64,000 bases of DNA from positions 186,001 to 250,000 of the forward strand of contig CBFFSA010000002.1 of NCBI GenBank assembly GCA_965644495.1, read 5' to 3'. The DNA is from Perkinsela sp. CCAP 1560/9 (lineage: Eukaryota > Protista > Euglenozoa: Kinetoplastea). The notes beneath the pieces were generated by a model, which was not told the DNA's origin, did not search any database, and saw only the letters and a program-made list of their open reading frames with translations. The position numbers and the translations under genes were made by a program. This document shows, one piece after another, positions 16,150-46,551 of this stretch; within the stretch, counting starts at the first letter, position 1; every line of letters starts with the position of its first letter.

Positions 16150-16860
16150 CCCTTCTACCCCCCCCCCCACCCCCTTTTCTCAGCCGCTCTTTTGTTTCTT
16201 CGGCGTCTTATTCTTCTTCAGCAGCATCCGGTGCAGCTGCGGCACCACCCCCCCGCCACGAATCGTCCCCCGCACCACCGCGTCCAGCTCCTCATCCCCG
16301 CGCACCGCGAGGAGGATATGCCGCGGGGTGATCCGTTTCGCCTTTAGATCCATACACGCGTTGCCGGCGAGTTCCAGCACCTCCGCGGTGAGGTACTCCA
16401 CCAGCGCCGCGGTGTAGATCGCCGCACTGGTCCCACAGCGCTGGTGACGGAGCAAGTCCTGTTTTAGTCGACGGTGGATGCGGCCGACGGGGAACTGCAG
16501 CCCCGCCCGAGCGGAGCGTGACAGCGGGGGCTTGCGGACCTTCCCGCTGGTCTTGCCGGCGGATTTCCCGGTCTTGGCTTTGCCGCCCTTGCCGCGGGTT
16601 TTGGCCGCGACTTTGGCGCCGGTGGTGGTGGTGGTGCCGGGTAATGCGGGGGGGAGGGTGGGGGAGGAGGGGGGTGAGTTATCGCGGAGGGGAGAGGGGG
16701 AGGGTTCGGGGGAGAGGCCGAGGGATTCGGAGGCCATGGGGGAGGGAGAAGAAGGAGAGAAGGAAAAGAAAGAGGGAGAGGGAGAGAGAAATAAAGAAAA
16801 TAACTACGAAAGGAGAGTAAATGAGGAATTATAAGAATTGGTAGGGTGAGGATGGTGAGT
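16150..16860. other. GC-rich skew-flip island 1
   Basis: + strand C runs at ~16150-16400, G runs at ~16620-16860. Confidence 0.8.
16180..16737 (-). CDS. H2AZ: Histone variant H2A.Z with long kinetoplastid-type N-tail
   Basis: [49 protein letters not shown]. Confidence 0.95.
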
Positions 16861-17235
16861 ACAAGGAGATGGACAGGAAGCATCACATCGCGAGAAAATA
16901 TTCCTAGTTAGAGAGGTGAAACTTAAAAAAACGGCACCTGAACGAAACGGGGCAAACCGACTCAATCCCATTGAAATCAATGGCGATTTCTAATTGTCGG
17001 TTTTTCAAGGATGGTTCCCAGCTTTTTCGGGGAGCCATGCACCATGGTGGCCCCCCTTTAAGACCACTAGGCGTTACTCTGCCCCAGGACAACGAAACAG
17101 TGCCTAGAAGCACACATGACAGAAAAATGATGCCTGGGCGAAATACTAGACTGCACTTATTTTTCCGTTATCGGAATAGCCACTACCACATTGGACGAAA
17201 AAGTGACTGTAGAGTTTAGAAAGAACGACTTGGAC

Positions 17236-17421
17236 GAGGAACTAGAAATTGGCTGCGGGTTTTCTTATTCGATTCACAAAGTTCAAGGGGCTGCTGTCCT
17301 GGGAAATTTGTGCGTTGATCTTAATCAACGCCCATAAACTTATCACAGATGTATGCTGACTCACGCTTCCGTTTACGTTGCTCTTTCGAGAGTAAAGTCA
17401 GGACAGCAGATATGGTTGTTC
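17236..17421 (+). pseudogene. Pif1/RecD-like SF1B helicase C-terminal fragment
   Basis: GFSYSIHKVQG...VDLNQRP*...VYVALSRVKS (motifs V/VI) with in-frame TAA at 17335-17337. Confidence 0.8.
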
Positions 17422-17562
17422 CATAACTTTCCAAAGAAATGCGAACAAGACTCCTTGAAGGAGTCTTGTAAAACCGAAAAGGCATACTCAGGCCAATCCT
17501 TCAGGCTAATAAGATTGGTATGCCTTTTTGGTTTGACTAGCATTTTGTGTTGTGCATGATTC

Positions 17563-17670
17563 TTCCGAATAGGGAAGCATTACCTAGGTGTCCACGACAG
17601 CACTGTAAAGTTGTGGGTAAAACGCTTCGAGGAAACCGGAGATATTGAGCGTGCTACGCCCTTCTCGAAG
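17563..17670 (+). pseudogene. Tc1/IS630-like transposase N-terminal HTH fragment
   Basis: LGVHDSTVKLWVKRFEETGDIER. Confidence 0.65.
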
Positions 17671-18434
17671 CGTGCCGTGAAATTATCGACAAATATGACA
17701 GCTTCGTCACATTGTTTGCTATGACGAGAAAAGTTCACTTGTCAACTTGGACAGAAAAGCCGTTCTTACATTGGCAGAGCATGACCAGCATAAAGACGAA
17801 TAAGAAAGACGAATAAACACAGTAACTAGTAGAAGTAAATAGACTGCGCCAGGCGAGCCGAAGCGAACCGACCCCGAACTTAAACCGAATTTCGCTTCAG
17901 TTTAGCCGGTTTCATCCCTCTAAGTTAGGGGAGGTGACGGTACTTACGCGTTTATGAGGAGACGATATTCTGTTTTAATTAATAGCGAATGTTTCTATTA
18001 TTGAAATGAATTGGGTGCAAAGTCTTAGGAAGAACTGAAGGGTCAATCTCAACATAAAGATCCATGCTTTCAAGAAAAATTCAAGTTTTCAGGAAGACGA
18101 TCAAACATCACTAAACCAGAGAAAGAGTTGTTATCCGTTGTAAAATACATCAGTGAAGACGCGCTACACGGTGGTGCGAAGCGGAGGCCCCTCTTCAAAG
18201 GAAAGAAGAGTTTCCGGCCCTAGCGCCAGCCGGAAACGAACACGCATAAAGTTTTAAGCGTATGCTCGTTTCCGGGAAAGGAAAAGACGAACTAGAGAAA
18301 ATACACCAAGGTACGTAAACTGTATCTTAGTAAAAAGAACATGGATTCGTGAGATCAAGATTTCCTTCAAATTGGTTGTCACTGAGTCGGTTGAGTCTGA
18401 GGGCCTGGTAGATTCGGAGGTCCAGATAATTCCA

Positions 18435-18758
18435 GATTACTCCGGACGGTCACTGGCAAGCCAGACCCTTCGCAGACTGATTTGGAAATTCCGAGGCCGA
18501 CGTCCTCTACCAGTTTCCTCTTGTCCAAGGCGGTACCAACGCACTGCTACCAAAACGCTGCGTCGACGAATTGTTCGCCAACACGGCTTACCCAAGAGGT
18601 GTAATCCGGGTAAGGGACCTGTTTCCCTGAGGGGAGGGTCCGGGTCGGTCCTCCGAATACTGGGCCTAGTCGGTTCTCAGCCCAGCCTCCTAGAGTGCGG
18701 CCGCCGGGAATAATGCGATGAGCGGGTTTGAACTCGCCGTCTGAGAACACCATGTGCT
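18435..18758 (+). repeat. ~320-bp dispersed GC-rich repeat, copy A
   Basis: Aligns by eye end-to-end with the reverse complement of 25429-25750. Confidence 0.92.
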
Positions 18759-18829
18759 TCAAACTTTGAATTCTTGCCACTCCGCCACCTGAATCAGCAT
18801 GGGGTGATAAAATAAAATAAAATTCTGTG

Positions 18830-19768
18830 TCAGTCAGTGGGCCCAATGCAGGGCCCGAGTGACCCAGCATGGCCCCCAGTGGGCCTTGGTGGCCCCGAGT
18901 GGACCCGAAAACCGGCGATAAATATACTGTCGCTCCGATGACGTTTCGGACCGCTAACCTCATTTCTTCTATTTGTATCTCGTATCTCTACGATTTCAAC
19001 CTCAGCTTCTGCGGAGATGGAACTACGAGGCGGAGGTCTCGCCACGTGGACGAGGTGGAATTTGTCTGTCTTTCGGTGTTTGATGATGCGACGTTGTAGA
19101 AGGTCATCTTTAAGGGAAGTGACTTCACTTCCTTCCAGTGTAGCCAAAAGTTTATCCTTGACATCATCTTGAATTTGGTGAAAAAAACTTTGGATCAACT
19201 TCAAGGTTTGCATCCCACAAGGTCGATAAAAAGCTTTCCACCAAAGCTGCTTGATCGTCGCGTAGTCTCTTTTTGAAAAAGAGAAAAATTTTCTCGTTCG
19301 CACGCACAACCTCGTACATGCGCCACATGTTTCGAAGAAATTCTTGCAGGGAGTTGCGTGGGTGATTAAAGTATGCGCATATTGCTTCCGAGAGATGTAG
19401 CGCTTGATGGAAACATCTTTAGCTCGCTTGATCAAGATAAGGACCTGTGCCACGTGACCGAACATGAGTTTCGTGCCTCAAAGCATGCGGCCAACGTACT
19501 CTGCACACACATTGAGAATTTTAGTCTCTTGAAGCTCACGAGCGTGAAGATGGTCGATGGCACTGGGCAGAAGTCGTTCCGAATCCTTTGGAGCATTGCA
19601 TAGAGGACAGTAGTTCGTGCCTATGATTACAGAGACCCTTTGACATTGGATGCAAGGATCCTTTGCATCACTTTCAATGGTGCATGCACACATTACACAC
19701 CGTATAGGTTCCCCCAAAGACACGTGGCGGTCCACCTTGCAGCGAGGACAATACATTTTTCCCATCAT
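18830..19768 (-). pseudogene. Multi-CxxC (double zinc-ribbon-like) ORF split by one in-frame TGA
   Basis: 19478..19768 and 18830..19465 share a frame; CPRC, CVMC, CIQC, CPLC; 18-bp direct repeat at 18889 and 19929. Confidence 0.55.
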
Positions 19769-20376
19769 AATAATTTTGAATAGATGGAGAGTTCGAATCT
19801 AGAGAATAATAATGAGTATCATTTTGCATCACAAGGGGGCAACTTTTAAGAAATAACAGTAACAATCCAGATCTGCTCAACTAAAATTATAAAAAATGAT
19901 CAGCAAAGACCAGTAGCAGTGCCACACCGTGGCCCCGAGTGGACCCAAAAAAGATGTCAAGTTGCAGGGGGTCTAGTGCCAGCCACACTTGCATGGACTC
20001 CATTACGGTGTTCCTCTATATATTTTCACTGTTTTCACTTGTTTTTCAATAATCGAGGGCAGAGCGGTAGTTATACAACCACCGCAATTGAAGTTTTTAC
20101 GGTAAGTGGATCTAAAGGCGAATTTAAGCGTTAGGGAATCTAATGAGAGAAAGCACCGGCAAGATATGCTTTAAATATAATTTTAGATACATACATGTAA
20201 CTGCAAGGAAGGGAGACTTCGGTTTCTAGTTTCTACTACTGGAGGACTTTAATTAATCGTTCAATTGATGTTTCCTTGGACTTTTAAAGTCCAAGGTATG
20301 TAAACGCTTTAGACTCATTAGCAAGGTACTTCGGTTAACATATTTTGATAAAGAAAGACATGAAAAAATCCAGATG

Positions 20377-20943
20377 TCACTTCTTTTTCGAGAAGGTTTG
20401 TGTCATGTTGCACACGTTGTAAAGAATATGCTGTGCATTGCGTTGGACGGCGTCCTTGACCAAGCCAACCTCGGAACTTTGAATACTGTGGATCAATGAC
20501 TTCGTGTGTTGAATTTGATTCTTCTGCTCTTTTAGAAGTGTAATAAGCTCTTTCATTGCAGTATCTTGCTGATCTCGAAGTGCAGCCAATGCGCATTGAC
20601 GAAGACGATGCGAATACAGAGCGATAGTTAACTCAGCACCCATAGGAAGCAGGCAAGTTTTTTTTGCCATGTTCCCTGATGGAGAATCACCATTTCCGCG
20701 TTGAATGCTTTCTAAACCTTCATGACATTTTTTTGAAGTTCGTAGCAAAGGTAGTGAAATTACTCTGAGCAAGTGAGCCCAACTTTCGGGATGTTGTCTG
20801 CTCCAATCCTCGTTGTCACTGTGAGGCGCTATTTGTGGATACGTCTCGATTAACCCGGTGCTCGTCATTTCAAATTGTAGATTCCTTTTCGAATAAACAA
20901 TATTCACAAAATGTAATATCCCGCATGAGAAAATATTGGGCAT
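20377..20943 (-). CDS. Hypothetical protein, coiled-coil C-terminus
   Basis: 188-aa ORF. Confidence 0.55.
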   Translation of the reverse strand: MPNIFSCGILHFVNIVYSKRNLQFEMTSTGLIETYPQIAPHSDNEDWSRQHPESWAHLLRVISLPLLRTSKKCHEGLESIQRGNGDSPSGNMAKKTCLLPMGAELTIALYSHRLRQCALAALRDQQDTAMKELITLLKEQKNQIQHTKSLIHSIQSSEVGLVKDAVQRNAQHILYNVCNMTQTFSKKK

Positions 20944-21358
20944 TAAATAGACTAACGTAAAAAGGGAAATGGCTTAAGGAAAAGACTTGAAATAAAAAAG
21001 GAATAATCAATTGCAAGAAAAGTACTTTGAACGGAACACAAAATTCTTTTTCCTCAGCACGAAGGTTTTAAGATCTTTGACGAAATAACATTAGGACCGA
21101 CATCAGCACACGGAGTCATGGCTAAATGTTTTAGTAGACATGTAAAATACACGTTAGTTCACTACGATAGGACCGCAATATTGAGTTTCCCCTACAACTG
21201 CGTGCTCGAACAACGCGCATGATGTCCAACATGAATACGACATAATCGTGGATTTCAATGCACAGTGTAACCTAACCAGAGTGTAGACATACACTACTGT
21301 ATCTTGAAAAGAACATTACTTTCTTTATGATTTCTTCTACTACATACCAATTCCAGAT

Positions 21359-23413
21359 TCAGACAGCTAATTCTTGAACAGAAATGCGTGCTACATCTGC
21401 CCAATTTTCATCCAAATCGGCGGCTCGTTGGTAGTTGAAAATTGCCTCTGATTTCCGACGGAGTTTCTCATGACAACGCGCTAAATTGAGGTGTACAAGC
21501 GCGTCCTCTGGACAGTGAATCCGCAAGAATTCTAAATCAGGAAAAGCCTTTTCATAGTTTGTTCGAAGCATTTCCAAGTGAGCCCGACGATGGCGTACGT
21601 TGTGGTTCTTAGAATCAACTTCCAATATTTGATCATAAATATTTAAAGCTCGAGTGCGTGCTTCTTCATCGTCGAGTTCTTCAAGTGACATTGCTAAGCC
21701 TGTCGCTAGAGCAGGATTTTCAGGCTTCAAGGCTTGCGCTGCCTCAAAGTAAGTTATGGCTAGAGGAAACTTACCACGTCGTCGTTCCACCTCGCCCAGT
21801 CCCGCAATCGCCGCATACAAACGTGGGTCGAAATCTAACGCCCGTTGAAAGCGCTCTGATGCTGACCTCCACGCCTCCTGACGTAAAAGCTCGAACCCAA
21901 GTAACACATGTCCGTACGCAAAATCCTCCTGCACGCCAATCGCAAGCGTGAACAGACGCTCTGCCTCCTCTACCTCTCCACAAAGGCTGTGGTAGTTACC
22001 GGCAACACACATAGCGATCACGGAAAACGGTTCCTGGGCCACACAACGCTGTGCCAGGGTACGAAGTTCAGCCACGGCTCGTGTGTGCCACAGCGCTATA
22101 CTGTAGTACAGAAGCGAGGGGTCCATTTTCCACGCATAGCGCCGGGTGTATGTCGACCACGACCGAACCGCCTCCGTGTATAGCCCTCTCTCGTAGTAGG
22201 TCTGCGCCAGCATCGGGAGATACCACTCCACGTGTTTGTGTGCGGTAGCGAAGGACCCGTTGGTGAGACAGGACAGCCCACTGGTGTTACTCCCACGGAG
22301 ACACTGGCGTGCCTCTACGTAGGGCTTTAGCACATCCACGACGGAGTGAAGTCTCTGGGCGTAGGTTTTTCGTAAAGGTCGCGGGTGAGTGCTCTCGGGG
22401 CTTATGTCCTCCATGTGGGTTGAGTGTAGAAAAGTACTCCGACGTCCGTAACTTGACGGTCGCCCGTCAAGGACTAAGTTGGAGAACTGTTGCAATGGGG
22501 TGCGACGTCCGAGCATGTTCGGGCGACGCTCTGAGGGTGGGGTGTGAAGATTTCGGGGTCGAGGCGACTTCATGAGAGGGGGAGGTGTACGCCTCGCGGT
22601 AGAGTTCCTCACAGGAGCCGGAGTGGAATATTCAAGAGAGGAATCCAAGGCTGAGCCCTGAGTGGTTCTAGTGGAGCTACGCATAGTAAGTCCACCCAGC
22701 GTACTTCGCCGATGTTTTCCTATAAGAGAACGTGTGAATACGGGAGGGGCGGCAGAAGGGTCTGACGTTTTGCACTCGGCTGAGGAAGGGACAGGTTCAT
22801 TACTTTCCTTTGCCATGTTCGGTTTTTCCGTCTTACAGTGTGTGTCGTTTTCAGATGCGGCATCAAAGTGTTCTGCTGTAAATTTATGAAATACATCATC
22901 CGTATCGGCGCCTCCACACAAAGCTTCATCGAGCGCTGCTATTTGGGTGGGATCTATAGAGTAACACTGTGAGTACGACTTTTTTGCCTCTGCGTGCCTG
23001 CCTAACCGTTTCTTGCACTCTGAAGTCCAATAAAGTATTCCACAGAAAAGGTCTTCTCGAATTTCGTGTGCTATGTCTTCCGTAGTTGACTCCAACGCAT
23101 ATCGTAATTCAGTTAAAGTTCGTTCAGCTTGCTTGAAATTCCCCACCTGCACCTGTGCTACTCCAAATAAGTACATTAAGCGAGCATAGGCAACGATATC
23201 ATTCAAGGAAAACGGATAGAGCGATTCTATAAAACGACAAACGGTTCGAACTTCGCCAGCGAGGTAGTAAGTCTGCGCTAAGATATGGGCTGTGCTAAGA
23301 TCCCGATTTATTTCATAGAGGCGATGAGCTAAAAAGATTGCATTGCGGTGAAGCAGAAGCCGGTGTGAACGATCAATAGCAGCGTGGAGACTCCTTATGA
23401 CCTCGTTGTCCAT
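21359..23413 (-). CDS. CDC27: APC/C subunit CDC27/APC3
   Basis: NAIFLAHRLY N-terminal TPR, S/T/P-rich linker, YYSIALWH, VAGNYHSL, FAYGHVLLGFE. Confidence 0.85.
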   Translation of the reverse strand: MDNEVIRSLHAAIDRSHRLLLHRNAIFLAHRLYEINRDLSTAHILAQTYYLAGEVRTVCRFIESLYPFSLNDIVAYARLMYLFGVAQVQVGNFKQAERTLTELRYALESTTEDIAHEIREDLFCGILYWTSECKKRLGRHAEAKKSYSQCYSIDPTQIAALDEALCGGADTDDVFHKFTAEHFDAASENDTHCKTEKPNMAKESNEPVPSSAECKTSDPSAAPPVFTRSLIGKHRRSTLGGLTMRSSTRTTQGSALDSSLEYSTPAPVRNSTARRTPPPLMKSPRPRNLHTPPSERRPNMLGRRTPLQQFSNLVLDGRPSSYGRRSTFLHSTHMEDISPESTHPRPLRKTYAQRLHSVVDVLKPYVEARQCLRGSNTSGLSCLTNGSFATAHKHVEWYLPMLAQTYYERGLYTEAVRSWSTYTRRYAWKMDPSLLYYSIALWHTRAVAELRTLAQRCVAQEPFSVIAMCVAGNYHSLCGEVEEAERLFTLAIGVQEDFAYGHVLLGFELLRQEAWRSASERFQRALDFDPRLYAAIAGLGEVERRRGKFPLAITYFEAAQALKPENPALATGLAMSLEELDDEEARTRALNIYDQILEVDSKNHNVRHRRAHLEMLRTNYEKAFPDLEFLRIHCPEDALVHLNLARCHEKLRRKSEAIFNYQRAADLDENWADVARISVQELAV

Positions 23414-23867
23414 CTAAGAGTAAAACAAGGTGTTATTGATTCAATTGAATCTATGCCATGTATAATTGTTCAACTTTCAAATAGAGTACTTAGTTACGAA
23501 ACATGCACAAAGCAATTTCGCTTAAAATATTGCTACGAAATGTAGTACGATTATAAATTTCAACGACTATCTACATCATAAAACCATTTTCTAGCAGTTC
23601 CTTAACGGCTTCAGTGTACTGCGGAAAATATGTCTTTTGCGGAAGGGTTAAACAAATTTACTCCGCGGTCGGTTCGTGAGTTACGTTATACCTTAGACTC
23701 GTATACCAAACAGTGATTTCGTTAAATTACAAAAGGCGAACAAAGCAAAGAAAAAACACGCCCAAAATACCAGTAAGCCAGCAAAAAAGCCGTGCGAAAC
23801 GAAAATTCAGAAGCTACTCAAACGTCAAACAATCAAAAGCAAATGAAAACAATCCAACGGTTAATCA

Positions 23868-24974
23868 TTAATCTAATTCGTCGCTGGATTGGGGCTTTGA
23901 AGAAGTTGATTTTGATGTTGATGTATCGTTGAATGGAGCTGATGTACTATTCGTACCGCTGGCGGAAGCCGAGGGCATGTTCATAGATGACATCATCTTC
24001 GAGATCAATTTAGACATTTTTGGGTCTTGCATGTATTGCATAGCACTCATAGGATTACTCATTAAGTTTTTAAGTTTCTCCGCCGTTTCAGGATCACGAA
24101 GAGCTGCTTGTACCTCAGGGTCTTGAAAAAGCGAATCCATCTTAGGAATGCCGCTGAAGGACGCGCCCGTAAATGGCGTCTCTGCCGTACTCGATGCTTC
24201 GGGTGTTTGACTTTTGTTCTGTCGTGGCATATAAAAATTTCTTTCTTCCGGTTCATGACGCGCGGACCTTCTCTCCTCCTGCACACGTTGCTTTGTGCGT
24301 AATTGACGGGCGCGAGACTCGACAAACTTTAATACTTCCGATGTATCGGGGTCATAATCAACTCGGTTAGCAGCATTTAAATCCAACGTGGCTTGAGCGT
24401 AGTTACCCAGATACCGATGTGCCATACCTCGTACACGGAGAGCTTTCGCATTCTCCGGATTGTATTGCAAGGCTCTGTTCGAGTCTTTTACAGCACAGTT
24501 GGGCTTTTTCCACTTTAAATAGCACTGAGCGCGAAGTGCCCAGAGGGGAGCTTTGTAGGGATTACAACGTAATGCCTCATTGATCTTTTCTATTCCCTTT
24601 GAGAGATCGCCCGCTTGTATGAGTTGTGCTGCCTCGGACCGAAGTTTGTTTATGTGCGTCTCCAAAGCCTCATCTGAGACTGATTCAGTGGGTTCCAGGA
24701 CTTCCTCGTATGAGGGGTCTTGAGGTTCCACTGTCCATAGATCCGGGTCCGGGTCTTCATCGGAGGAGATATCTGATTCTTCATCCATATCACATCCCAA
24801 GGAGTTTTCCGGAACGTCACGCTCACAGGGATTGTTAAGAAAGTTAGTACTGGCGTATTGAAGGAAATCGCGAAAAAAGGTCAAACGATCATCCTGAAGA
24901 AGATCTGGGTTTTCTTGAATCTTTTGAACGAACGAACGAACTGTAGTTATTTCTTCTTCGCACAAATTATTCAT
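23868..24974 (-). CDS. ST13: Hsc70-interacting protein HIP
   Basis: NPDLLQDDRLTFFRDFL dimerisation region, acidic stretch, 3 TPRs (KKPNCAVKD), STI1/DP C-terminus. Confidence 0.9.
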   Translation of the reverse strand: MNNLCEEEITTVRSFVQKIQENPDLLQDDRLTFFRDFLQYASTNFLNNPCERDVPENSLGCDMDEESDISSDEDPDPDLWTVEPQDPSYEEVLEPTESVSDEALETHINKLRSEAAQLIQAGDLSKGIEKINEALRCNPYKAPLWALRAQCYLKWKKPNCAVKDSNRALQYNPENAKALRVRGMAHRYLGNYAQATLDLNAANRVDYDPDTSEVLKFVESRARQLRTKQRVQEERRSARHEPEERNFYMPRQNKSQTPEASSTAETPFTGASFSGIPKMDSLFQDPEVQAALRDPETAEKLKNLMSNPMSAMQYMQDPKMSKLISKMMSSMNMPSASASGTNSTSAPFNDTSTSKSTSSKPQSSDELD

Positions 24975-25148
24975 AAGTTATAAAGAAACAAAAACTTTCT
25001 TGCCGCTATTTTTCTAAACTAAATGGCAATGAAGAGAAAATCGTTTCGCTTGTTTAGAAAGAGGGTGATGAATTCAAAATGTACACAAAAAATGAAGACC
25101 AGTCGCTTAACACAGTATTAAAATATGCAATTCTTAAATGTTACTAAA

Positions 25149-26040: not shown

Positions 26041-26316
26041 TTAAAATGAGTTGCTACGAAAAGGATTAAACTAAAAAAAGAATTGTACGTTGTATCTTGA
26101 TGCAAAAAGAATACCGGTATCGGACTTCCTGCGTAATACTTCTTGCAGTATTGAAAAAGATCTGCAGAAAAACGTTTTGAAGATGGAGTGCATTTACATG
26201 ACCAGAATGATAGAGTATAGTGATAGAGAACATTTACCATTGAAATTGTCGTTCAACTGTGTACATTATTCCATGTTTTCTATCTGTTCACGGTACTACT
26301 AAAATGATGGATTTTA

Positions 26317-27916: not shown

Positions 27917-27993
27917 CATAATATCGTAATTGAATATGCAAGGGAATTTGCAAATTTAGGAACTCCTCACCATGATATACTATGCTTTGCTGA

Positions 27994-30460: not shown

Positions 30461-31718
30461 TTACGGTGCGGGAGACTCTTCAAACGACGGAGCACTGCGT
30501 TTAGTTGTCTCACGCTTTTTATCCACACCTTTTCCGTCTTTCTCCGCCTTTTGTTTTTCTCGTTCCCTTGCCCGACGTTTGTTCTCGCGTCGGGTGTGAC
30601 GGGCTTTCTCCTCCAGGAGCGCCACCTCTGCTGGGGTCTTGGAAACGTAACTATGCCAAATCACTTCGCCCCCACACACCCCGCTCTCCACCTTGAGCAG
30701 TCTCAAACTGAGCCGGGGACCCAGTTCTACCAGCTTCACCCGGAGCGAACCCTTCTGCCGACGAAACGTCAGCGCGGGCGGAAGTTCAACATTCTCCCCT
30801 TCCCCCTCCGTATCCGAAGCTCCCCCAGGCCCCGCACTCAACGCCTCGGACAAACTCTCCGCATACGAAAAACTCTCCGGGACATTCCCCCCCGAGAGCT
30901 TCGCAATACTCCGATTCAACCCCGTGGGACGGGACTGTACCGTATAATGCCGCATCTCCAACACCACAGGCGTCTTTTCCTCCCCTCTCCCCTCCTCCTC
31001 CTTCCCCCCCTCCACACGCTCCACCTCCCCGGGCTTCATTAAATGAAACAACACCACACGGTGAATGTGACTCAAATCACTACGACGCTCCACCATGGGC
31101 TCCGGAACCATCGACTGCAACATCTCCAACGTCAGCGCAAGCTCCGGGCGAAGTCGCGAACCTGAAACCCACTTCTTTTTTTCTTCTCTATGGGTAGGGA
31201 CGGAACCCTCTTCATCCTCCTCACAAACTACCCCCCCCTCGCGCCCAAACCCGTTACACATCACCAGCGGGGGGTACTGGTACTGCCGCTGCCCCCCCGC
31301 GCACCCCCGGGTCCGTGCCCCCCTCCCCACCACCACCCCGCTCCCCGGGGTGTAGGACTGGACCCGGAAGCACAGCGTGGGGCCGTGGGGGAGGCGCGAG
31401 AGCGCGAGCGTGGGCCCGCGCGGGGGGCTGGCGAACTTAAACAGGTGGGTGAGCCGTAGCGCGGGGGCGAGCGCGAGGAGGTCGCGCAGGGGGTGGCGGG
31501 AGTGGGGGGGGGAGGTGGGAGAGGGTGTGGGGGGCGAGGGCCTTGCGGCAGTCCCGGATGAGGCGGTCCATGGTGGGGTCCGCGGGGCCGTGGTGGTAGA
31601 GGAGGGAGCAGGGGAGGGGGGCAGGGGAGGGGGTGGTGGGGGAGGGGGAGGAGGGGGGTGGTGGGGGTTGGGTGAGATGGGTGCGACGCTTCTTGCGACG
31701 TTTTCCTTTGTAGGGCAT
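30461..31718 (-). CDS. PPAN: Peter Pan/SSF1 Brix-domain ribosome biogenesis factor (one apparent frameshift)
   Basis: MPYKGKRRKKRRTH...LIRDCRKALAPHT in one frame; PLRDLL...GPTLCFRVQSY...LEMRHY...VKLVELGPRL in the other; shift at the G9 run 31504-31512. Confidence 0.88.
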
Positions 31719-31790
31719 GGGGTGGGGGGAATAGGGAGGAGGATGGGTAAAGGGAGATGGAGGGAACGTGGAAGATTGGGGTTGGGAGGT
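30600..31790. other. GC-rich skew-flip island 2
   Basis: C-rich to ~31340, G-rich from ~31380. Confidence 0.85.
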
Positions 31791-32111
31791 AAAGATGTCT
31801 TTTTTGAAGTAAAAAATGTAAGAGATTGTGAAAACTGTCATGTCCTATAAGATATACACGAGATACAAGATGTATTGATGTTCCCGTGTATATTGGCTCT
31901 GCGAAAGCAATATTAAAAGGCATAAATTGTAGGTAAAAAGTCTTAGAAAAATTCTTAAAGCTGATCCCCTCCTTATCCAAATGCTGCGCTAAATAATAAG
32001 TAGACTTTACAAAGAAAGAACAAAATTGCATTTTTCAGCAGACTAAGGCCCAATGTCGTCTTATCCATTCAACATTCAGTTGCGCATTCTATATGATCCA
32101 TTCGTCACTGC

Positions 32112-35578: not shown

Positions 35579-35604
35579 TTATGCATCATAGTGTACTGAT
35601 ACTA

Positions 35605-36904: not shown

Positions 36905-36971
36905 AAGAACCAGGCAAAACCAGGCAAAACTTGGCAAAACCCGGCAAAACTTAACAGGTTTCAACCCTCTA
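36905..36971. repeat. Solo hAT-like terminus with GGCAAAAC tandem repeats
   Basis: 4 x GGCAAAAC followed by ACAGGTTTCAACCCTCTA. Confidence 0.7.
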
Positions 36972-37030
36972 ATATGTCATAGAAAAAAGATCACGAAAAG
37001 CATAAATGTTCGTGCCACATAATACATTTT

Positions 37031-39790: not shown

Positions 39791-40095
39791 GCTGAAAAGA
39801 TCGCTGACGTATAAACTGGGGTGCTCGTGTAGAAATCAACGCGATGAACAAGTGGTCACCGTTTGCCCAAAAAACCAGAGATGTTATATGCCGTATTTAA
39901 GCCCATGTAAAATAGTTCCTCGTTAAAAAAAAACCTCTGCTTCACAGATTCATAATAAGTAGATATGATGGCACTAGCAAAAATAAAACTATAAGCGCCA
40001 AAATTCAGTGCCAAAATAATAATTTGATTTATAAGACTAAATACCCAATTAAAATGTGAAAAATACTTCTCAGAGGGAATAACTACGTATCACCA

Positions 40096-41793
40096 CTACT
40101 TGCGCAGAAATGGAAGGATTTTACTATCTAACGGCCTGACTAGTGCTCTGCAAAACCTCATGTGTCGACAAAGACCGTAGTGTCCATGATCACGAGCAGC
40201 CGCAGAAATCTTCACATACAGACTTGGATCAAAAAACTCGAAAAATGATGTCTCCGAAAGATGAAGCATAAAATAATAAATCTCTTCAATATCACCTACG
40301 TCTAGTAGTGTATGTAGGAGAGTTTCTACAGTCTCAATTGTATCACATGCAAATGTTCGACGATTCGCAGCGTGAGATTCATTATAGGATGTTGAAACAG
40401 GAACTGAACGAAATTGATACAAGCAGCGAGAAAGTTTACGTGTAAGATCACTGTTTCTGCCTTTACAACTAACAACATTTTTATCTTTTAACGACTTCAG
40501 TAGAGCTTCACACAGAACTTGTAGAGTTCTGGGTATTGCAGGGATACACGTAAATATCCTTTGTATAAAAGAACCTGACTTATTAGAATCCGTAGAATTG
40601 ATGTAAGTAAGCCAATAAAGAGTGCTTAAAGCACCACGTCGCCGTGCAAGCTCTTCAACAGCTAGGCTAAGTTTAACATCTATCCCATTTACGGATTTCT
40701 CACCAAATGATCCCTGTACAGATGGATCGAGCTCCGTCATGATGTAGTTTTGCAATTCTGCGCTCGACATTGTACTATCCTGTAGTTTTAATTGAAGTTC
40801 TATATCGGATAGGTTTATAGATTCAGAACATGAAGTTATTTTATCGCCTGTCAACACCTTACCTGTTGGTTTCACACTGCGTATCAATTGGCAATGCATT
40901 TCCCGTGCCTCTTGATGCTTCCTCCCAAACAATAACGCCTCGCAAAAATAAAGTGATGCTTTAGGGTACTGGAAAGGATGCCTCGTAAGGGAGGGAAACA
41001 TTTTTTCCAGGATATGCAGAAAGTTGTCATCGCCGGACACACGCAGACCATATATCACAATTGAAAGAATCTCATCCCAATGGGCGTAGTTCGCTGGCGC
41101 GGCTCCACGCTTGCGATAAACTGCCTCATAATCCTTGGCGTCTTCCACAAAACCCTCCGACACATCCATGATGCCCATGAGAAGAATCTTCATGCCTGGA
41201 ACACAACCTAAAAGAGATAAGCACTGGAGTATATCCATAGAAAAGTTATACAACGTTTTATTCGTCGCAACACGAAGTGTGGTGCGGCCAAGCACACTAG
41301 CACGCTGCTTTTGCAACGGGCAATTGGATAGATAAGGGCGGGTGACAAGATCTAGTGTCACTCTCCATAAGGGAAGTAGCAAATCCTCTGCTATATGCGG
41401 CGCAATGCGACCTTGCCCTTCCCAGAGGAGCGTGTGAAGGTATCCCACCGAAGTAGCTAATTTTTCAACAATCTCTTCCGGGAGAGGACGTCGTCCGGAA
41501 GAGCCTAGTTCTTGAAGAAGCATCAGGACACGTGAATAGTTGCGCTCCGCTGTGTGGGAAAGCAACAAATGGTGTAGAATTTCATCACCTGGAACATAAC
41601 CATGGGAAGAAGCAAGACGTTGATACTGTCGTTCCTTTTCGGTAGAAGTTTTGGAGGCAAACAATTGCTCCCGTATGGAAAGATAGGTTGGAGTATTATG
41701 TCGAGAACAGTTTAACGTACGAACGAAGGGGAGCTTAATAAGATGTTGGGTTGATGATTCAGCGTGATATTGCAGTTTTTGCCGGAAGAACAT
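40096..41793 (-). CDS. Hypothetical helical protein, possibly mitochondrial
   Basis: 565-aa ORF with a basic MFFRQK N-terminus. Confidence 0.75.
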   Translation of the reverse strand: MFFRQKLQYHAESSTQHLIKLPFVRTLNCSRHNTPTYLSIREQLFASKTSTEKERQYQRLASSHGYVPGDEILHHLLLSHTAERNYSRVLMLLQELGSSGRRPLPEEIVEKLATSVGYLHTLLWEGQGRIAPHIAEDLLLPLWRVTLDLVTRPYLSNCPLQKQRASVLGRTTLRVATNKTLYNFSMDILQCLSLLGCVPGMKILLMGIMDVSEGFVEDAKDYEAVYRKRGAAPANYAHWDEILSIVIYGLRVSGDDNFLHILEKMFPSLTRHPFQYPKASLYFCEALLFGRKHQEAREMHCQLIRSVKPTGKVLTGDKITSCSESINLSDIELQLKLQDSTMSSAELQNYIMTELDPSVQGSFGEKSVNGIDVKLSLAVEELARRRGALSTLYWLTYINSTDSNKSGSFIQRIFTCIPAIPRTLQVLCEALLKSLKDKNVVSCKGRNSDLTRKLSRCLYQFRSVPVSTSYNESHAANRRTFACDTIETVETLLHTLLDVGDIEEIYYFMLHLSETSFFEFFDPSLYVKISAAARDHGHYGLCRHMRFCRALVRPLDSKILPFLRK

Positions 41794-42211
41794 GACGGCG
41801 CTAAACGCTCAGTGGAAGTTATCAAAAGCTTGATTTGATCCCAATTGATATCGCATCGATATTTGATAGTATAAATTACTGCATAGTTTTCATAAGGAGG
41901 CAAACAAACGGCGGTTACAATGAAAATATAATATCTTATTATATATTCCAATTGAAACTGAAGGATTGTAATGTAGCTGAGAGTGTACTCCATGATTATA
42001 TTAATGAGCACCAAAATATCGTATAATGTCGTATAATGCACCAAAATGTCGTATAATGACCATGATTATCACGTTTAAAAAACGCACCTGAAAAGCGCAT
42101 TATTTGTGTATCTTGATGTCAATTTAATCTCCTAATTTTGCTTTGTCCACTTTCCCCGTTCTTTGCCATTACATTATCACACAAACTTCATTCACATTCG
42201 CATGCTTCAAA

Positions 42212-42856
42212 TTAGTAAAGTCGCTGTGGTTTTCCCATGGTTGACTTTAAGTACACACTGCTGAGGTTTTGCCAATTCTTCTTTAAGAGGGAGACGAGGA
42301 AATTGATGGCCATAGTTGTGTTCTGCCGTACTTCATCGTCACCCATCTTCAAATGACCCACGCAACATGCGAGACACAGAACTTTCTTCAGTTGAAACTT
42401 TACTGTGGATTGGATTTCCTTTATCTTTCCGACCAGATCATCCCCTGGAGAGACTGCAGTAGGAAACTTTCCGGCGCGATTCATTTGGGGTCCCACCACT
42501 TTCGGAACCTGCTTGATCACGGTATCGCTGGCCAGAAAGGCATCGTAGCTCTCACAAAGCTTCTTTACAAGTTTCTTGTTCTTGTTGAGTTTCTTCAAGT
42601 CATCCATGTTAATGTGGAGAATACCGAGCTTCTCTGCTTGTTCCTCGTGCGCGGCGTCTGCAATGATACATACGCGGAACCGAGGGCGAGCAATGTGAGG
42701 GAGTTTGACGGAACCGCTAAAACGCTTGTCCTTAGTGGGGTCGTAGTTCTTCAAGTTGAACTGAAGATCGACTGATTCGTTGAACTTTCGCTTCTTCTCC
42801 GGGTTCAGCACTTCTTTGATGGCACCAAGAAGGGTGGCCGGAGCGATTTTAGACAT
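42212..42856 (-). CDS. RPL10A: 60S ribosomal protein L10a (uL1)
   Basis: [37 protein letters not shown]. Confidence 0.98.
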
Positions 42857-43445
42857 TTGTTCTAACTTCTAAGGAAAGAGCGCAATACAAAACAATATGG
42901 AAACACAGAGTTGTATGATAACAAGTTTCTCTGTCTTTTTATCCTGACTACAGAAGCTCGAAAAACAATAATATATAAATATTTAGATTTTTAAAAAAAC
43001 AGGGATGTACCGTGCAATATAAATGCAACTTAATAATGACGAGAAATCGTTTCAAAAATTCTTGACGTTTTCCACTTGTCACAAAGCGTTAGTGGATTTA
43101 ATCTTTCTTGATCAAAATCTTAGATTCAAATGTACGAAACATTGCTACTTACAGATGATACCTGCACCCTCTTATAAATTCCAGCGTGGTTTATCACATT
43201 GACTCACGAAACAAGAAAAAAATTAAGCTTCTTCGCACAAGTCTTACGTTCTACGTTTCGTATGCCCTAAAAAATGAAGAAAGGTAAAATGTTCATTAGA
43301 GCGTGCATCTGCGGATACTAAACCACTGTCCAGCGTACCATATCTCTCCAGTATATTAAGAGGGGTGGACCGGGATCGGTGCGAGCGGGTGTGGCCGGGT
43401 GCGCGCGGGGATTATAAAGTAGAGATCCAAAAAAGTTAACGTATA

Positions 43446-43736
43446 CCCCCCCTCCCAGTAATAGACCCCCCCAGTAACAGAGATTTGACCATTTTTGGGC
43501 TGACCCCCAGTAACAAGGATTTGTCTCGAAAGGGTGGTTGGAGGGGGGAGGGGGTGTTTGGGCGGGGTGAGGGTGATTGCACGGGAGCGAATGGCGCAGT
43601 TGCGGGGTTGTCTGGACAGAAAATCAACCCACTCATGAACAAAAAAGGCTTTTGCCCACCAAAAAAGCGTACCCCCCACAGTAGCAAGAATTTGGTCATT
43701 TTGGTCCAAAATCGATTCTATTACTGGGGAGGGGTG
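43446..43736. mobile_element. TA-flanked MITE
   Basis: TA|CCCCCCCTCCCAGTAATAGA ... TCTATTACTGGGGAGGGGTG|TA; internal CCCCCAGTAAC repeats. Confidence 0.75.
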
Positions 43737-44862
43737 TAAGGCTTCCCTATAATGTTTTAGTACCAAGGAGGTGAATGAGTTTATACACTTCCCTGGCTTC
43801 AGAATTTTGAAATGCACACGTTACCACTACTTTTAGTAGACTTTTTCGAAGTTTTTTCTCCAGCAAAACTATCAACTTTCGGCATAACTATTTTTTGATG
43901 AAATACAGTAGAAACGTATCCTAAACGAGTAGAAAATACAGTAGAAACGTATCCGAAACCTTCTAGTTCCAAATTTTATTTTGAGCTTGTATACCTTTTG
44001 ATGGATCTTCCTCCCGACGACACTGTGTCTTCTGAAGACATGTATGCCAGCTCTTCTTCTCCCATCTACCACCGTTTGCGCAAATGGGTAAGCCACAAGT
44101 TGCGCGAAACAATGATTATGCCTTTGACTCGCAAGGAAATAATAAACTTGAATTTCGTTGGTCTTTCGGATGTAGAGAAGAACAAGATCAAATACGCGGA
44201 GAAACGTCTTCCTGCGCAAAAAATCATGGGGCGCATAGAAGAGGGTGTCCTACATACTTGCTGATCGTCGTCAGCAGCTTCAGGTTGGGTCAGAGACTTG
44301 CCTAAAAACACTTTGCGAAATTCCTACAGATGAAACAATCCTACTTGAGGTATTGGTTTCGATGGCAAAGACCCGTGACGCGGGACTCATGTTCTACAAA
44401 GATGCCATAAAATGGCGTTACGTTACATCATGGCGTTAAGGAACGAGAGATGGAGAATTACTGGCGATGGAACAGTCCAGAGGGCAAGTGGAAACTTGTA
44501 CTTCAGGTTTTACCTGTGGACTCGTTAGCTAAGGATATGGATAAGTTCCTTAGGCAGTACTATGATGGGAAGTATGAGCATTCTCATCGCTCCTCTAAAG
44601 AACTTAGAATTCGATCTGCAAAGTCTACTCCCACACTCGTTCACAATGTCTGCGCCTTACCGAGATGTCCTTCTTGGATGTCAGACCTTGTATGTCTGCA
44701 TCACATGCCTTTACAGGATACGACGCTGGTATTGTTTCATCCTTATCCGTACGAATCGGGTGCACAAGCTTACAAAAGTTCGCGTCATTGAGTGTCATTC
44801 ACCTCAATTTAAGCTATGAACAGGCTACGGTCGTCCTACTTCCGTGTCTCGGCAAAAAAAGG

Positions 44863-46551
44863 TCACAGACGAAGTACAAGAGACCTAAGACGATTCAAGG
44901 CTCCGGACATTTCAAAGCGCCGCACACGACTTGAAAACCCCAATGGAAACCAGCTTTTGCCTGTTTGGGGCTCAACTTCTGGCCTAGTCTCGAATTTTTC
45001 TCCAATGGATTTCAAGCAAGAATTCGATGGCTTTTCCTCCGCAAGCCTGAGCAAGGCTTGTGCGATAAAATTCGCTTGTGCGGGTTCCACAAGTTGTTCC
45101 AGGTGAGAAATGTCAACTTCCTCCGTCCCACACTGAATGTAGCCTCGGGTAGCTTTGACCCTTGGGCTGTCTTTATTCAGACACCAAAAACTGCGCCCAA
45201 CTTCAACCCATCGATCCCGAGGAAGCACCAGCGGAGTGCTGGGTTTAGGAGGGAGGCTGCAAAGTCCGGGGGACTCACGTAATATCTCTGTGACCTGATC
45301 AGTAAGGTCATCACATCTGTACCCCTGCAACCCCAACACCGTGTCTGCGACGTGCAGGTACTGCCCCGACCCCCCAACAACCAGAATAATAGATACGCCA
45401 TGGGTACGAAATAATTCCCGCACACGAGACACAAACGGCACAATTGGCTCCGCCTCCACGACCCTCGCTATCAACGCATCCCGAACCATAAAATTCGTCG
45501 CCGAGGTATCCTCATCCACCAAAAGCGTCTGCGCCCCACATTCCAACGCCTCCGCAATATTCGCCGCCTGACTCGTCGACCCACTCGCATCCGGTGAACA
45601 AAACACCGCCGTATTCGCCCCCGACGGCACCTCCTTAATAAACGACCCAATATCCACGCTCGTCACCACACGTCGATCCTCCGCTCGAATCTTACACGCC
45701 GTCGGGTCCGTCACCACAAACTCTCTCCCATCCCCGGGCAAATGATTATACACCCCCACCTGCAACGCCCTCAACAGGGTCGATTTCCAATGAAACCCAC
45801 CCCCCGTAATCACAACCACCCCACGCGGAATCCCCATCCCCGTCACCACCCTCCCCGACGGCAGCCGCACCGTTTTCTCCAGCCTCTTCGGGGACGCGAA
45901 CGGGAGGGCCCCGGGCAGCGCCGTGTCCACCGTCCCCGAGGCCCTGGGGAGCACCGCCCCATTGGCCACGAACCCACACAGCCCCCTCCCCGGGAGGGCG
46001 TCCCGCAGCGCCTGCTGGTCACCCACGTGGGTGAGGTAGTCCCCCATGTGGGCGGGGGGGACGCGGCTGAGGTGAGTGAGAACCCGCAGGGGGGCGTGCA
46101 CTAAGGCCCGGGCACACCCCGGGGCGTCGACACGACGGTGGGGACCGGGGAGCGCGACCCGGCAGCGGAGCTCCACGCCCCCGGCGGGGGTGAGAAGCAC
46201 CGCGGAGCGCTGGAGGATGTGCTGGGAGGGGGGGAGGAGCTCAAGGGGGGGGAGGGGGCTGGGGAGCGCCCCGTGGGCACGGCGAAGGAGGTAGTCCGCG
46301 GCGGCGATGTGGGAGATGTGGGTGGGGTCGGAGAGGTTAAGGGGGAGGGAGGTGAGGAAGGGGAGGGAGCAGCGTAGGGTGAGTTGGCTGCCCGGGGCGA
46401 AGGGGTCGGGTTGGACTCGGGTGAGTTCGCCCTGGAAGAGGGAGTTCCCCCCCAGGCTGTATTTGATGCCTTGGAGATTGCGCAGGGTGCTGTAGGGGGC
46501 TTCGTGCATTCTCTGCAGCCGTTTATCCATCGGTTCTGCGTTTCCGATCAT
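44863..46551 (-). CDS. ABC-class P-loop ATPase (PF09818 type), MRB1590-like
   Basis: VQPDPFAP, FVANGAVLPRASG, GVYNHLPGDGRE, ASGSTSQAA, DEDTSATNFM, ALNRLR. Confidence 0.9.
   Translation of the reverse strand: MIGNAEPMDKRLQRMHEAPYSTLRNLQGIKYSLGGNSLFQGELTRVQPDPFAPGSQLTLRCSLPFLTSLPLNLSDPTHISHIAAADYLLRRAHGALPSPLPPLELLPPSQHILQRSAVLLTPAGGVELRCRVALPGPHRRVDAPGCARALVHAPLRVLTHLSRVPPAHMGDYLTHVGDQQALRDALPGRGLCGFVANGAVLPRASGTVDTALPGALPFASPKRLEKTVRLPSGRVVTGMGIPRGVVVITGGGFHWKSTLLRALQVGVYNHLPGDGREFVVTDPTACKIRAEDRRVVTSVDIGSFIKEVPSGANTAVFCSPDASGSTSQAANIAEALECGAQTLLVDEDTSATNFMVRDALIARVVEAEPIVPFVSRVRELFRTHGVSIILVVGGSGQYLHVADTVLGLQGYRCDDLTDQVTEILRESPGLCSLPPKPSTPLVLPRDRWVEVGRSFWCLNKDSPRVKATRGYIQCGTEEVDISHLEQLVEPAQANFIAQALLRLAEEKPSNSCLKSIGEKFETRPEVEPQTGKSWFPLGFSSRVRRFEMSGALNRLRSLVLRL
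45330..46500. other. GC-rich skew-flip island 3
   Basis: C/A-rich to ~46020, G-rich from ~46130. Confidence 0.85.

Follow-up and report, generated by a model that had tools for sequence, protein, structure and literature searches.

Mirror-image C-to-G islands inside genes of a unidirectional kinetoplastid gene array: candidate footprints of an outward, strand-asymmetric mutational process

Why should about one gene in six in a one-way gene array of an early-branching kinetoplastid carry a GC-rich patch of about 1.1 kb, in which each strand flips sharply from C-rich to G-rich? The window, by which we mean the whole stretch of 64,000 nucleotides analysed, raises this question most clearly in three places, where 100-bp windows reach a GC content of 0.65-0.78 against a window mean of 0.437. 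As the initial annotation had described, each flip (~16440-16600, 31350 and 46030) has a C-rich plus strand to its left and a G-rich one to its right, and the flips lie inside three unrelated minus-strand genes, encoding H2A.Z, a Brix/PPAN protein and an MRB1590-type ABC ATPase (Table 1). We confirmed that the intragenic sites are fixed, that their local bias is strong and strand-symmetric, and that neither gene orientation nor protein function accounts for it. The left sides had been called "C(A)-rich"; this holds for C, whereas the A component is weak and lacks an AT-skew flip. Altogether, the islands are real, discrete, lineage-specific footprints, and their cause is most likely mutational rather than a coded function.

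Table 1. Islands and host genes in the window (positions count from its first letter)
Feature	Coordinates	Strand or polarity	Details
Island 1, left arm	16000..16299	+ strand C-rich	100-bp GC skew -0.43 to -0.72
Island 1, balanced core	16300..16599	polarity switch here	GC 0.64-0.73, skew ~0
Island 1, right arm	16600..16899	+ strand G-rich	GC skew +0.56 to +0.78
H2A.Z gene, 185 aa	16180..16737	-	Pfam Histone and H2A_C domains; entirely within island 1
Island 5, weak	21780..22790, centre ~22190		in CDC27/APC3 (21359-23413, -); two-sided flip -0.10 / +0.13
Island 2, left arm	30506..31346	+ strand C-rich, sense G-rich	change-point fit: skew density -0.22, GC 0.60
Island 2, right arm	31347..31826	+ strand G-rich, sense C-rich	skew density +0.41, GC 0.67
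Brix/PPAN gene	30461..31718	-	two overlapping ORFs and a third frame for the N-terminus
Island 3, left arm	45306..46026	+ strand C-rich, sense G-rich	skew density -0.23, GC 0.62
Island 3, right arm	46027..46446	+ strand G-rich, sense C-rich	skew density +0.31, GC 0.72
MRB1590-type ABC-class ATPase gene, 562 aa	44863..46551	-	Pfam ABC_N, ABC_ATPase and MRB1590_C
Island 4, weaker	51073..51953, centre ~51453		over RPS9 (51260-51826, -); third-position skew -0.73 to +0.55

The host gene of island 1 is an H2A.Z, its best PDB matches being to H2A.Z (165 bits) as against about 124 bits for canonical H2A. Third-position skew along this gene changes from -0.92 to +0.68. Since the plus strand is C-rich in the left arms, the sense (minus) strand is G-rich there; in island 1 this arm takes in the 3' portion of H2A.Z together with the start of the 3' UTR, and has a G13-like run. 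The core corresponds to the histone-fold region, with the centre placed at 16436 by the cumulative-skew minimum and at 16596 by the change-point. The right arm spans the N-terminal tail, the 5' UTR and a polypyrimidine tract, and its G-rich plus strand makes the sense strand C/T-rich.

The right arm of island 2 begins some 100 bp upstream of the start codon of PPAN and reaches a 100-bp skew of +0.82. Here the reading frame is interrupted at least twice, at homopolymers within the island (a C9 run at ~31504-31513 and G runs at ~31262-31336); an independent assembly has a one-base difference in the run at 31504. The syntenic PPAN orthologues in L021 and Perkinsela have an intact frame and no island. 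Island 3 occupies roughly the first 1.2 kb of the ATPase gene, its left arm spanning the P-loop domain and its right arm the N-terminal domain, and composition is normal in the last 440 bp. The Pfam domains cross the island boundary with their conserved residues kept, and third-position skew goes from -0.63 to +0.87 along the gene. GC3 within the H2A.Z and ATPase islands is 0.8-0.9.

Two weaker islands lie at ~51.5 and ~22.2 kb. In RPS9, third positions shift from 29 C and 11 G in the first third to 10 C and 32 G in the last, a switch absent from relatives with an 86-87% identical protein. In CDC27/APC3, GC3 reaches 0.68 in the gene's fourth sixth, and the L021 orthologue is flat. The 14.8-kb regularity suggested by the three strong sites is a coincidence: over C2:50-260 kb the 17 intervals between islands are irregular (1.8-27.9 kb, mean 11.6, CV 0.67), with one site per ~12 kb.

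This 210-kb region is a single transcription unit, and the gene array around the islands is unidirectional for more than 200 kb. It holds 21 two-sided C-to-G flips, a count that exceeds chance, as 200-bp block shuffles of the same sequence gave a mean of 5 and a maximum of 11. There was no independent flip of the opposite, G-to-C, kind in the 210 kb; the three found were all island edges. Islands are typically ~1.15 kb long, reach outward by ~0.5 kb per side, and are graded continuously in strength rather than uniform. All 18 of 18 island centres fall inside ORFs, against ~11.6 expected from the 64% of coding sequence (P ~3.5e-4).

Mis-assembly or contamination had been raised as a possible origin of the islands; the two islands that we compared were, however, reproduced in an independent ENA assembly. 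Island 1 is near-identical in that assembly (L026), with no difference at all over 16187-16808, and the PPAN island shows ~4 substitutions per kb. The two assemblies differ as a mosaic of identical blocks and blocks ~1-4% divergent, and homopolymer lengths within islands vary between them. Differences were not elevated inside the two islands compared, so that a high present-day mutation rate is not evident, although saturation might mask one. The comparison of orthologues in sister species, proposed in the initial annotation, gave no shared island: we found none in 84 kb from four related prokinetoplastid genomes, syntenic orthologues included.

The check on synonymous sites proposed in the initial annotation came out positive. 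At four-fold degenerate sites, where the background is 0.20, C reaches 0.61 in one arm and G reaches 0.59 in the opposite arm; in each arm A and T give way to just that one strong base, with the remaining strong base at background. The losses of A and T are equal, and no AT-skew flip (T>A co-skew) occurs at the islands. Two-fold sites reveal a strict strandedness. On the arm with the C-rich sense strand, C/(C+T) at NNY codons is 0.72 (background 0.39), and G/(A+G) at NNR codons is just 0.44 (background 0.38); the arm with the G-rich sense strand is its mirror (G 0.73, C 0.40). Such strict strand specificity rules out classical GC-biased gene conversion, and the two-fold pattern looks like mutational asymmetry rather than conversion acting on base pairs. 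A GC-biased conversion hotspot, from which strand-symmetric enrichment of W-to-S changes would be expected, was rejected on these sites.

The skew is also seen in non-coding and UTR flanks and at first and second codon positions. Translational codon-usage bias was rejected as well, since it should produce a uniform, synonymous-only bias in highly expressed genes, contrary to the flip within genes and the UTR skew. Amino-acid use follows the islands, with proline rising from 4.8% to 14.7% (threefold) and glycine from 4.7% to 12.9% (2.7-fold). Conserved residues are retained despite this shift, a combination that is mutation pressure opposing selection.

The shape of the islands points to their centres. 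In the averaged profile, C stands at 0.41 in one 50-bp bin and at 0.20 in the next, with G going from 0.26 to 0.47 over the same step, an abruptness that has to be read with the alignment of the islands on their skew minimum in mind. GC content forms a triangle, peaking at 0.67 in the centre and decaying over ~550-700 bp; skew is back to background by the same distance and does not persist along the replicon. The triangular GC profile and the abrupt switch are consistent with a process started at the centre. The two arms are similar in length (medians 480 and 550 bp), and the stronger is the one with the C-rich sense strand, which lies 5' in the gene. Similar arm sizes, together with a stronger C-rich-sense arm despite unidirectional transcription, argue against a purely transcriptional cause.

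The proposal that the outward G tracts could form G-quadruplexes (G4) was borne out at the level of motifs: 51 of the 58 G4 motifs in the 210 kb lie within islands, always on the outward strand (plus-strand motifs right of the centre in 33/33 cases, minus-strand motifs left of it in 18/18). The arms themselves are not reverse complements of each other. Their best local alignments were low-complexity matches, most z-scores against arm-wise shuffles were below 3 (with one outlier at 10.2), and folding energies were near those of the shuffles for most islands. An inverted repeat or cruciform was therefore rejected, as the arms show no specific complementarity beyond composition.

Considering all the above results, the 5'-to-3' strand running outward from each centre is driven toward G and the inward strand toward C, with codon choice and tolerant amino-acid positions overridden. 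We read the islands as probable footprints of a strand-asymmetric mutational process working outward from fixed points; our leading candidate for these points, which we hold tentatively, is a fixed site of bidirectional replication initiation. In this model the strand running outward would serve as lagging-strand template in a bidirectional replication bubble, and at a constitutive initiation site it would be exposed or re-synthesised again and again. Where this exposed strand has lesions or gaps, they might be resolved by base-independent insertion of C opposite, for which we suggest REV1-type bypass of non-instructive sites as a possible step. Such insertion would convert any base to G on the exposed strand and would yield both the central GC peak and the sharp skew jump; the G-runs and G4 motifs would be by-products that might reinforce the site. 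By analogy, the upward polarity of the jump matches that of classical origin skew jumps, and also that of bidirectional CpG-island promoters. Counting against an origin are the local extent of the skew (~±0.5 kb), the lack of T>A co-skew and a density high for constitutive origins. Nor would a simple origin model predict that every centre lies inside an ORF.

Divergent transcription is the first alternative, and in our opinion an unlikely one. Bidirectional starts or stalling at the centre would expose the outward non-template strands and drive them toward G, and G-rich RNA would stabilise further R-loops, leading to runaway growth as at bidirectional CpG-island promoters. The polarity predicted is the one observed and also that of bidirectional CpG islands (PMC2817419); the positive feedback would account for discrete, extreme islands. 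Every centre is within a transcribed ORF, arm ends often lie near mRNA boundaries (in 13/18 islands the 5' edge is no more than 250 bp to either side of the ATG, and in 10/18 the 3' edge is equally near the stop), and the arm in the sense direction has its G4 motifs and G-runs on the non-template strand. However, transcription is one-way for more than 200 kb, and the stronger 5' arm has a C-rich non-template strand, so that antisense transcription would need to dominate locally. Moreover, non-island genes of the unit show no sense-strand skew gradient, and the island genes, which include RFC, CDC27, a kinase and a RING protein, share no function or expression class.

Recombination hotspots, which we consider somewhat more doubtful, would act through central double-strand breaks, resection and biased repair or fill-in over ~0.5 kb per side, with hotspot turnover between lineages. 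Island size fits the scales of resection and conversion tracts, and the triangular GC peak, the lineage-specific and continuously varying islands and the mosaic of identical and ~1-4% divergent blocks between assemblies are all compatible with recombination. Runaway GC islands that alter conserved proteins are also known from gerbils (PMC7403616, PMC6573468). Yet classical GC-biased conversion acts on base pairs and should lift G and C equally in each arm, which the two-fold sites contradict. Human meiotic hotspots, where exposed inward 3' tails carry C>N and A>N changes, including C>G and A>G (PMC7615360), predict the opposite polarity. The location of the centres, in ORFs and not in intergenic DNA that is presumably poor in nucleosomes, also counts against hotspots.

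Less probable still is a selected element, in which mirror C and G arms would be functional as outward G4 arrays, nucleosome-excluding poly(dG:dC) or fold-back structures, kept for chromatin, pausing or origin licensing. The perfect strand specificity of the G4 motifs in the arms and the invariant polarity favour this idea, and selection for G as such would deplete A and T to the same degree, as is seen. On the other hand, no sampled relative conserves an island, even at syntenic orthologues, the arms lack specific complementarity, no common motif was apparent by inspection, and a coding location is costly through amino-acid changes and frameshift-prone runs. Finally, ordinary codon-usage selection in highly expressed genes, or an assembly, contamination or base-calling artefact, could appeal to ribosomal protein genes with raised GC3 (P0 0.71, RPL1 0.58) and to the in-island homopolymer differences, but is already contradicted and deserves almost no credence: every sixth of P0 is C-biased or balanced within its raised GC3 with no switch to G, whereas island polarity flips within a gene and affects all three codon positions and UTR flanks, low-expression classes included; neither ORFs nor Pfam domains are interrupted at island borders, RPS9 is 86% identical to its relatives in protein despite its third-position switch, and the same islands recur in the independent assembly (two compared).

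How, then, do the islands compare with known systems? Classical origins, with the upward skew jump cited in PMC9645720, share with them a plus strand that turns from C-rich to G-rich at one point. At human constitutive origins GC rises locally, together with skews and an enrichment of G4, and this is ascribed to initiation-linked mutagenesis (Murat et al. 2022, PMC9645720); all three are features of the islands. The islands differ from bacterial and human origin jumps in their intensity (skew as high as 0.8, and GC of up to 0.78 where the genome has 44%), in their confinement to ±0.5 kb, in lacking a T/A skew flip and in having centres always in coding sequence. Arabidopsis origins are ~0.8-kb GC-skewed, GGN-rich GC peaks, mostly exonic in an AT-rich genome (Sequeira-Mendes et al. 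2019, PMC6499314), and likewise have one G-rich strand able to form G4. Their skew, however, is a modest one-sided peak over the midpoint, in contrast to the mirror-image flip seen here.

Bidirectional CpG-island promoters carry R-loop-associated GC skew (Polak and Arndt 2009, PMC2817419) and resemble the islands in being GC-rich over ~1 kb, with G-rich non-template strands and positive skew running outward. The islands, instead, are not at transcription-unit ends but in ORFs of one unidirectional polycistron, in a genome without CpG depletion (background observed/expected 0.99). Gerbil GC islands, large and attributed to GC-biased conversion (PMC7403616, PMC6573468), are a further case of local composition drive able to remodel conserved proteins; the bias described here differs in being strand-specific and flipping at a point. 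Closest in phylogeny are the origins of T. brucei, also in Kinetoplastea, which stranded SNS-seq places mostly in intergenic regions, with plus-strand G4s upstream and minus-strand G4s downstream (2026, PMC13179062). They share with the islands strand-specific G4s flanking a centre and sites within polycistronic units, whereas the islands have the opposite G4 polarity to these (OGRE type) origins and place all 18 of their centres in ORFs.

We confirmed that the three skew-flip islands described in the initial annotation are present in 100-bp GC and skew profiles, where they peak at a GC content of 0.73-0.78 over a window mean of 0.437, the + strand passing at each of them from strongly C-rich to strongly G-rich. 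Their host genes are indeed unrelated, encoding H2A.Z (by best PDB matches), a Brix/PPAN protein and an MRB1590-type ABC ATPase. The skew is also carried by synonymous sites, which had been set beforehand as the point on which the claim could fail: third-position GC is 0.8-0.9, and the skew at these positions changes from -0.92 to +0.68 along H2A.Z and from -0.63 to +0.87 along the ATPase gene. Furthermore, the H2A.Z and PPAN islands are found almost unchanged in an independent ENA assembly (ERZ24900291, ~0.2-1.5% divergent), and ORFs and Pfam domains continue across the island borders. We conclude that the islands are not an artefact of mis-assembly or contaminating reads.

The even spacing of ~14.8 kb did not hold, as the intervals are irregular and further islands lie inside the window (see Table). 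We extended the scan to positions 1-186000 and 250001-260000 of contig CBFFSA010000002.1 (C2), with 260 kb of genome read and a 210-kb core analysed. In this core, 18 C-to-G flips are clear and 3 are weak, with spacings of 1.8-27.9 kb (mean 11.6 kb, CV 0.67), where 200-bp block shuffles yield ~5 flips of either polarity. G-to-C flips number just 3 in the core, all of them island edges; island polarity is therefore invariant and, because the pattern is its own reverse complement, each strand reads 5'-C-rich then G-rich-3'. Genome-wide, C7..G7 homopolymer pairs gave 175 matches vs 121 for G7..C7, a comparison that is uninformative about polarity, since poly-G-bearing repeats dominate the latter class. 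Arrays of G7-11 runs with TCCA spacers ('GGGGGGGGTCCA' units) recur on several contigs, and this family of repeats interferes with simple poly-G pattern searches. No skew-flip island was found in the first 57 kb of C2. The subtelomeric end of this contig carries a tandem repeat of ~1,995 bp in at least 5 copies, with a 196-aa ORF in every unit, adjoined by a 2.5-kb block whose + strand is uniformly C-rich (skew -0.37, GC 0.55).

Table. Coordinates of the islands and of other features (window positions unless preceded by C2).
Feature	Position	Strand	Gene or remark
Island centre	~16.45 kb		H2A.Z
Weaker island	~22.2 kb		CDC27
Island centre	~31.35 kb		PPAN
Island centre	~46.03 kb		ATPase
Weaker island	~51.5 kb		RPS9
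PPAN gene	30461-31718	-	Brix/PPAN protein
PPAN frame shift sites	C9 run ~31504-31513; G runs ~31262-31336	-	reading-frame breaks
ATPase gene	44863-46551	-	MRB1590-type ABC ATPase
ATPase residue 255	45783-45785	-	Trp replaces Walker-A glycine before lysine
P0 gene	46822-47793	-	GC3 0.71, no C-to-G flip
RPL1 gene	42212-42856	-	GC3 0.58, no C-to-G flip
P0 - eIF3D - PPAN order	21359-47793		common to four related stretches
RNase H domain ORF (example)	C2:29193-33440		
Tandem repeat and adjoining C-rich block (L001-L003)	C2:8870-17440 and C2:19500-22000		subtelomeric end
G7-11/TCCA arrays (examples)	C2:951954-952197; C2:1446855-1447169		

Change-point fits give a total island length of ~1150 bp, with medians of 480 bp for the 5' C-rich arm on the gene strand (C arm) and 550 bp for the 3' G-rich arm (G arm). 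In the mean profile of 18 islands, GC is 0.67 at the centre and falls about linearly to background by ~-700 / +550 bp; the C/G switch is confined to one 50-bp bin, to be read with the caveat that the skew minimum served to align the islands, and CpG observed/expected is ~1 throughout. Islands occupy ~11% of the core and touch 19 of its 119 ORFs. Besides H2A.Z, PPAN, the ATPase, RPS9 and CDC27, the genes concerned encode RCC1-like, RFC, kinase, DEAD helicase, RING, transketolase, HMG-CoA reductase, CobW and MAM33 proteins, and are unrelated. A general 5'-C to 3'-G gradient of all genes was rejected, since the 81 non-island genes are flat (second minus first half 0.029, P = 0.12), so the islands are discrete. 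The raised GC3 of the ribosomal genes P0 and RPL1, with every sixth of P0 C-biased or balanced, looks like ordinary codon-usage bias and provides an internal contrast to the islands.

All 18 centres lie within ORFs, the coding share of the region being 64% (P ~3.5e-4). Of the 18 islands, 13 have their 5' edge no more than 250 bp to either side of the ATG, and 10 have their 3' edge equally close to the stop. This match looked significant at first, but by our own estimate much of it would follow from short genes together with a G arm unable to pass the stop into the polypyrimidine/processing region of the next gene, and we retain it only as a hint. We take the edge alignment to reflect a constraint; it does not prove that the mechanism is mRNA-based.

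At four-fold sites of the C arm, C is 0.61 (background 0.20), G 0.18 (0.19), A 0.08 (0.26) and T 0.13 (0.345), and the G arm is the mirror image: A and T are lost about equally, while the other strong base is untouched on average. At two-fold sites, NNY codons of the C arm show a rise of C/(C+T) from 0.39 to 0.72, while for its NNR codons G/(A+G) increases far less (0.38 to 0.44); the G arm has 0.73 for G/(A+G) and 0.40 for C/(C+T). This asymmetry rules out classical gBGC (pair-level W->S), and the drive is therefore strand-specific, towards C on the centre-ward strand, that is G on the strand leaving the centre. First and second codon positions are also shifted, with a rise of proline on the C arm (4.8% to 14.7%) and of glycine (4.7% to 12.9%) and valine (5.8% to 10.3%) on the G arm. 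Likewise, the non-coding flanks are skewed (5' flank G 0.04; 3' flank C 0.09, G 0.33). Conserved residues are kept in the ATPase, and RPS9 is 86-87% identical to relatives, with a third-position C-to-G switch only in this genome. We conclude that the pattern is mutation pressure checked by purifying selection. Faster protein divergence in the ATPase island was not observed, the ratio of own-to-others to others-to-others identity being 0.83-0.95 in the arms vs 0.85 outside.

As had been proposed for the outward G tracts, G4 prediction places 51 of the 58 canonical motifs in the 210 kb within island arms, on exactly the expected strand (plus for 33/33 on right arms, minus for 18/18 on left arms). 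The essential PPAN gene is split over three reading frames, with at least two shifts at long C/G runs; at 31504 there is a one-base difference in the second assembly, where still only the 3' piece of the gene is called. Possible causes of these breaks are homopolymer error in long reads, genuine polymorphism, or expression that depends on slippage; sequencing error is conceivable because the length of one run differs between the assemblies. In the ATPase, the Walker-A motif reads GGGFHWKST instead of the consensus GGGFHGKST, in a column otherwise invariant in nine orthologues, which leaves two readings: an error in the sequence, or an MRB1590 homologue that is ATPase-dead. No record of the exact ATPase protein was found.

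The closest relative found (stretch L021; eIF3D 53% identical) conserves the gene order P0-eIF3D-PPAN-PSD13-STI1-CDC27, and its PPAN and CDC27 contain no island. Across 84 kb of four relatives (L021, Perkinsela and two ENA contigs with Perkinsela-like gene order), where the island density of this genome would predict ~7, no orthologue shares one, the maximum flip score being <0.10 vs 0.14-0.42 here. On this comparison, the islands appear lineage-specific. The order P0 - eIF3D - PPAN is common to L021 and three other prokinetoplastid stretches (L022, L024, L025), extending to CDC27 in L021, and in this genome ~13 kb of extra genes, the ATPase included, lie between P0 and eIF3D. Two stretches of the second ENA assembly (L026, L027), which comes from this organism or one very close to it, match window 1-43758 as a mosaic, with no differences at, e.g., 41-43.7 kb and 1-4.5% divergent blocks at 35.5-37 kb; this looks like haplotype/strain recombination or loss of heterozygosity.

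The assembly comprises 21.0 Mb in 110 contigs. All long ORFs of the window are on the minus strand, and over C2:1-260000 this minus-strand array continues without a break from ~50 kb up to 260 kb or beyond, constituting a kinetoplastid-type polycistronic unit. A kinetoplastid spliced-leader 13-mer had six dispersed matches. Judged by its leucyl-tRNA synthetase (61% identity to EukProt entry 'PhM_4', 53% to Perkinsela sp. CCAP 1560/4), the source organism falls in Prokinetoplastina. From the strain code, we take PhM_4 to be Papus ankaliazontas. The latter species is described in PMC7859406. RNase H domains have at least 138 matches genome-wide, mostly in ORFs of 1,000-2,800 aa and also in a tandem array on contig C45, so that the retroelement load is heavy for a kinetoplastid genome of 21 Mb.

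A centre-out geometry with the outward strand turning to G is common to three situations: an origin, divergent transcription with R-loops, and fill-in at a break. We tentatively favour, at somewhat less than even confidence, the arms being lagging-strand templates of a candidate bidirectional origin. The polarity equals the universal skew jump at origins, the step is sharp, the arms are comparable despite one-way transcription, and the stronger arm is the one with the C-rich sense strand. On the other hand, the skew is local only, without T/A co-skew, and the ORF-only position of the centres is left unexplained. That A and T are lost almost equally suggests a base-independent step, and we infer that C may be inserted opposite, e.g., non-instructive lesions. 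The genome has three IMS-domain (Y-family polymerase) genes and RNase HII, which speaks neither for nor against such insertion. Hence neither the Y-family polymerases nor RNase H were seen to be lost; RNase H matches are plentiful, although most are in long retroelement ORFs.

Divergent transcription or R-loops, in which the outward strands would be the non-template ones, fit the geometry and seem to us improbable. Repair linked to DSBs, with fill-in synthesis after a central break, is slightly less probable again: it is weakened by the two-fold-site result, and human recombination hotspots are reported to show the opposite strand asymmetry (PMC7615360). Breaks in flanking intergenic DNA with inward resection were rejected: in long genes the two arms adjoin each other, and the G-to-C flips, being one-sided edges of islands, leave the genes to either side unaffected. 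A selected structural element seems to us a little less likely still, weakened by the non-conservation of the islands in relatives and by the lack of specific arm-to-arm complementarity, which also led us to reject a true inverted repeat or selected hairpin. Codon usage or artefact is excluded in practice.

No description of such islands was found in the literature searched. If their centres are initiation sites, they would offer a sequence-readable, high-resolution origin map in a small genome, from a lineage with disputed origin placement, and a natural experiment in the shaping of genes by initiation-linked mutagenesis. A bolder form, which we consider possible but unlikely, has the centres as constitutive, base-pair-precise bidirectional replication start sites in coding DNA, the firing of which, by way of a strand-specific anything-to-G repair or bypass pathway so far undescribed, would have rewritten about one tenth of the core genome and its proteins. 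By extrapolation there would be ~1,800 centres in the 21-Mb genome, and this would be a eukaryote with origins directly legible in its sequence. Whatever the trigger, the mutational process is extreme, cleanly polarised and overrides selection: it triples proline on one arm, nearly triples glycine on the other, places frameshift-prone homopolymers in essential genes and concentrates nearly all regional G4 motifs in the islands. Codon-usage, dN/dS and gene-prediction analyses of this organism will be misled by the islands.

With regard to known systems, the origins mapped by SNS-seq in T. brucei are mostly intergenic and of opposite G4 polarity to the islands (PMC13179062), which argues against placing origins at the centres. 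On the other hand, constitutive human origins (PMC9645720) and Arabidopsis origins (PMC6499314) carry local GC and skew footprints, and thus provide a precedent for the origin reading that we favour.
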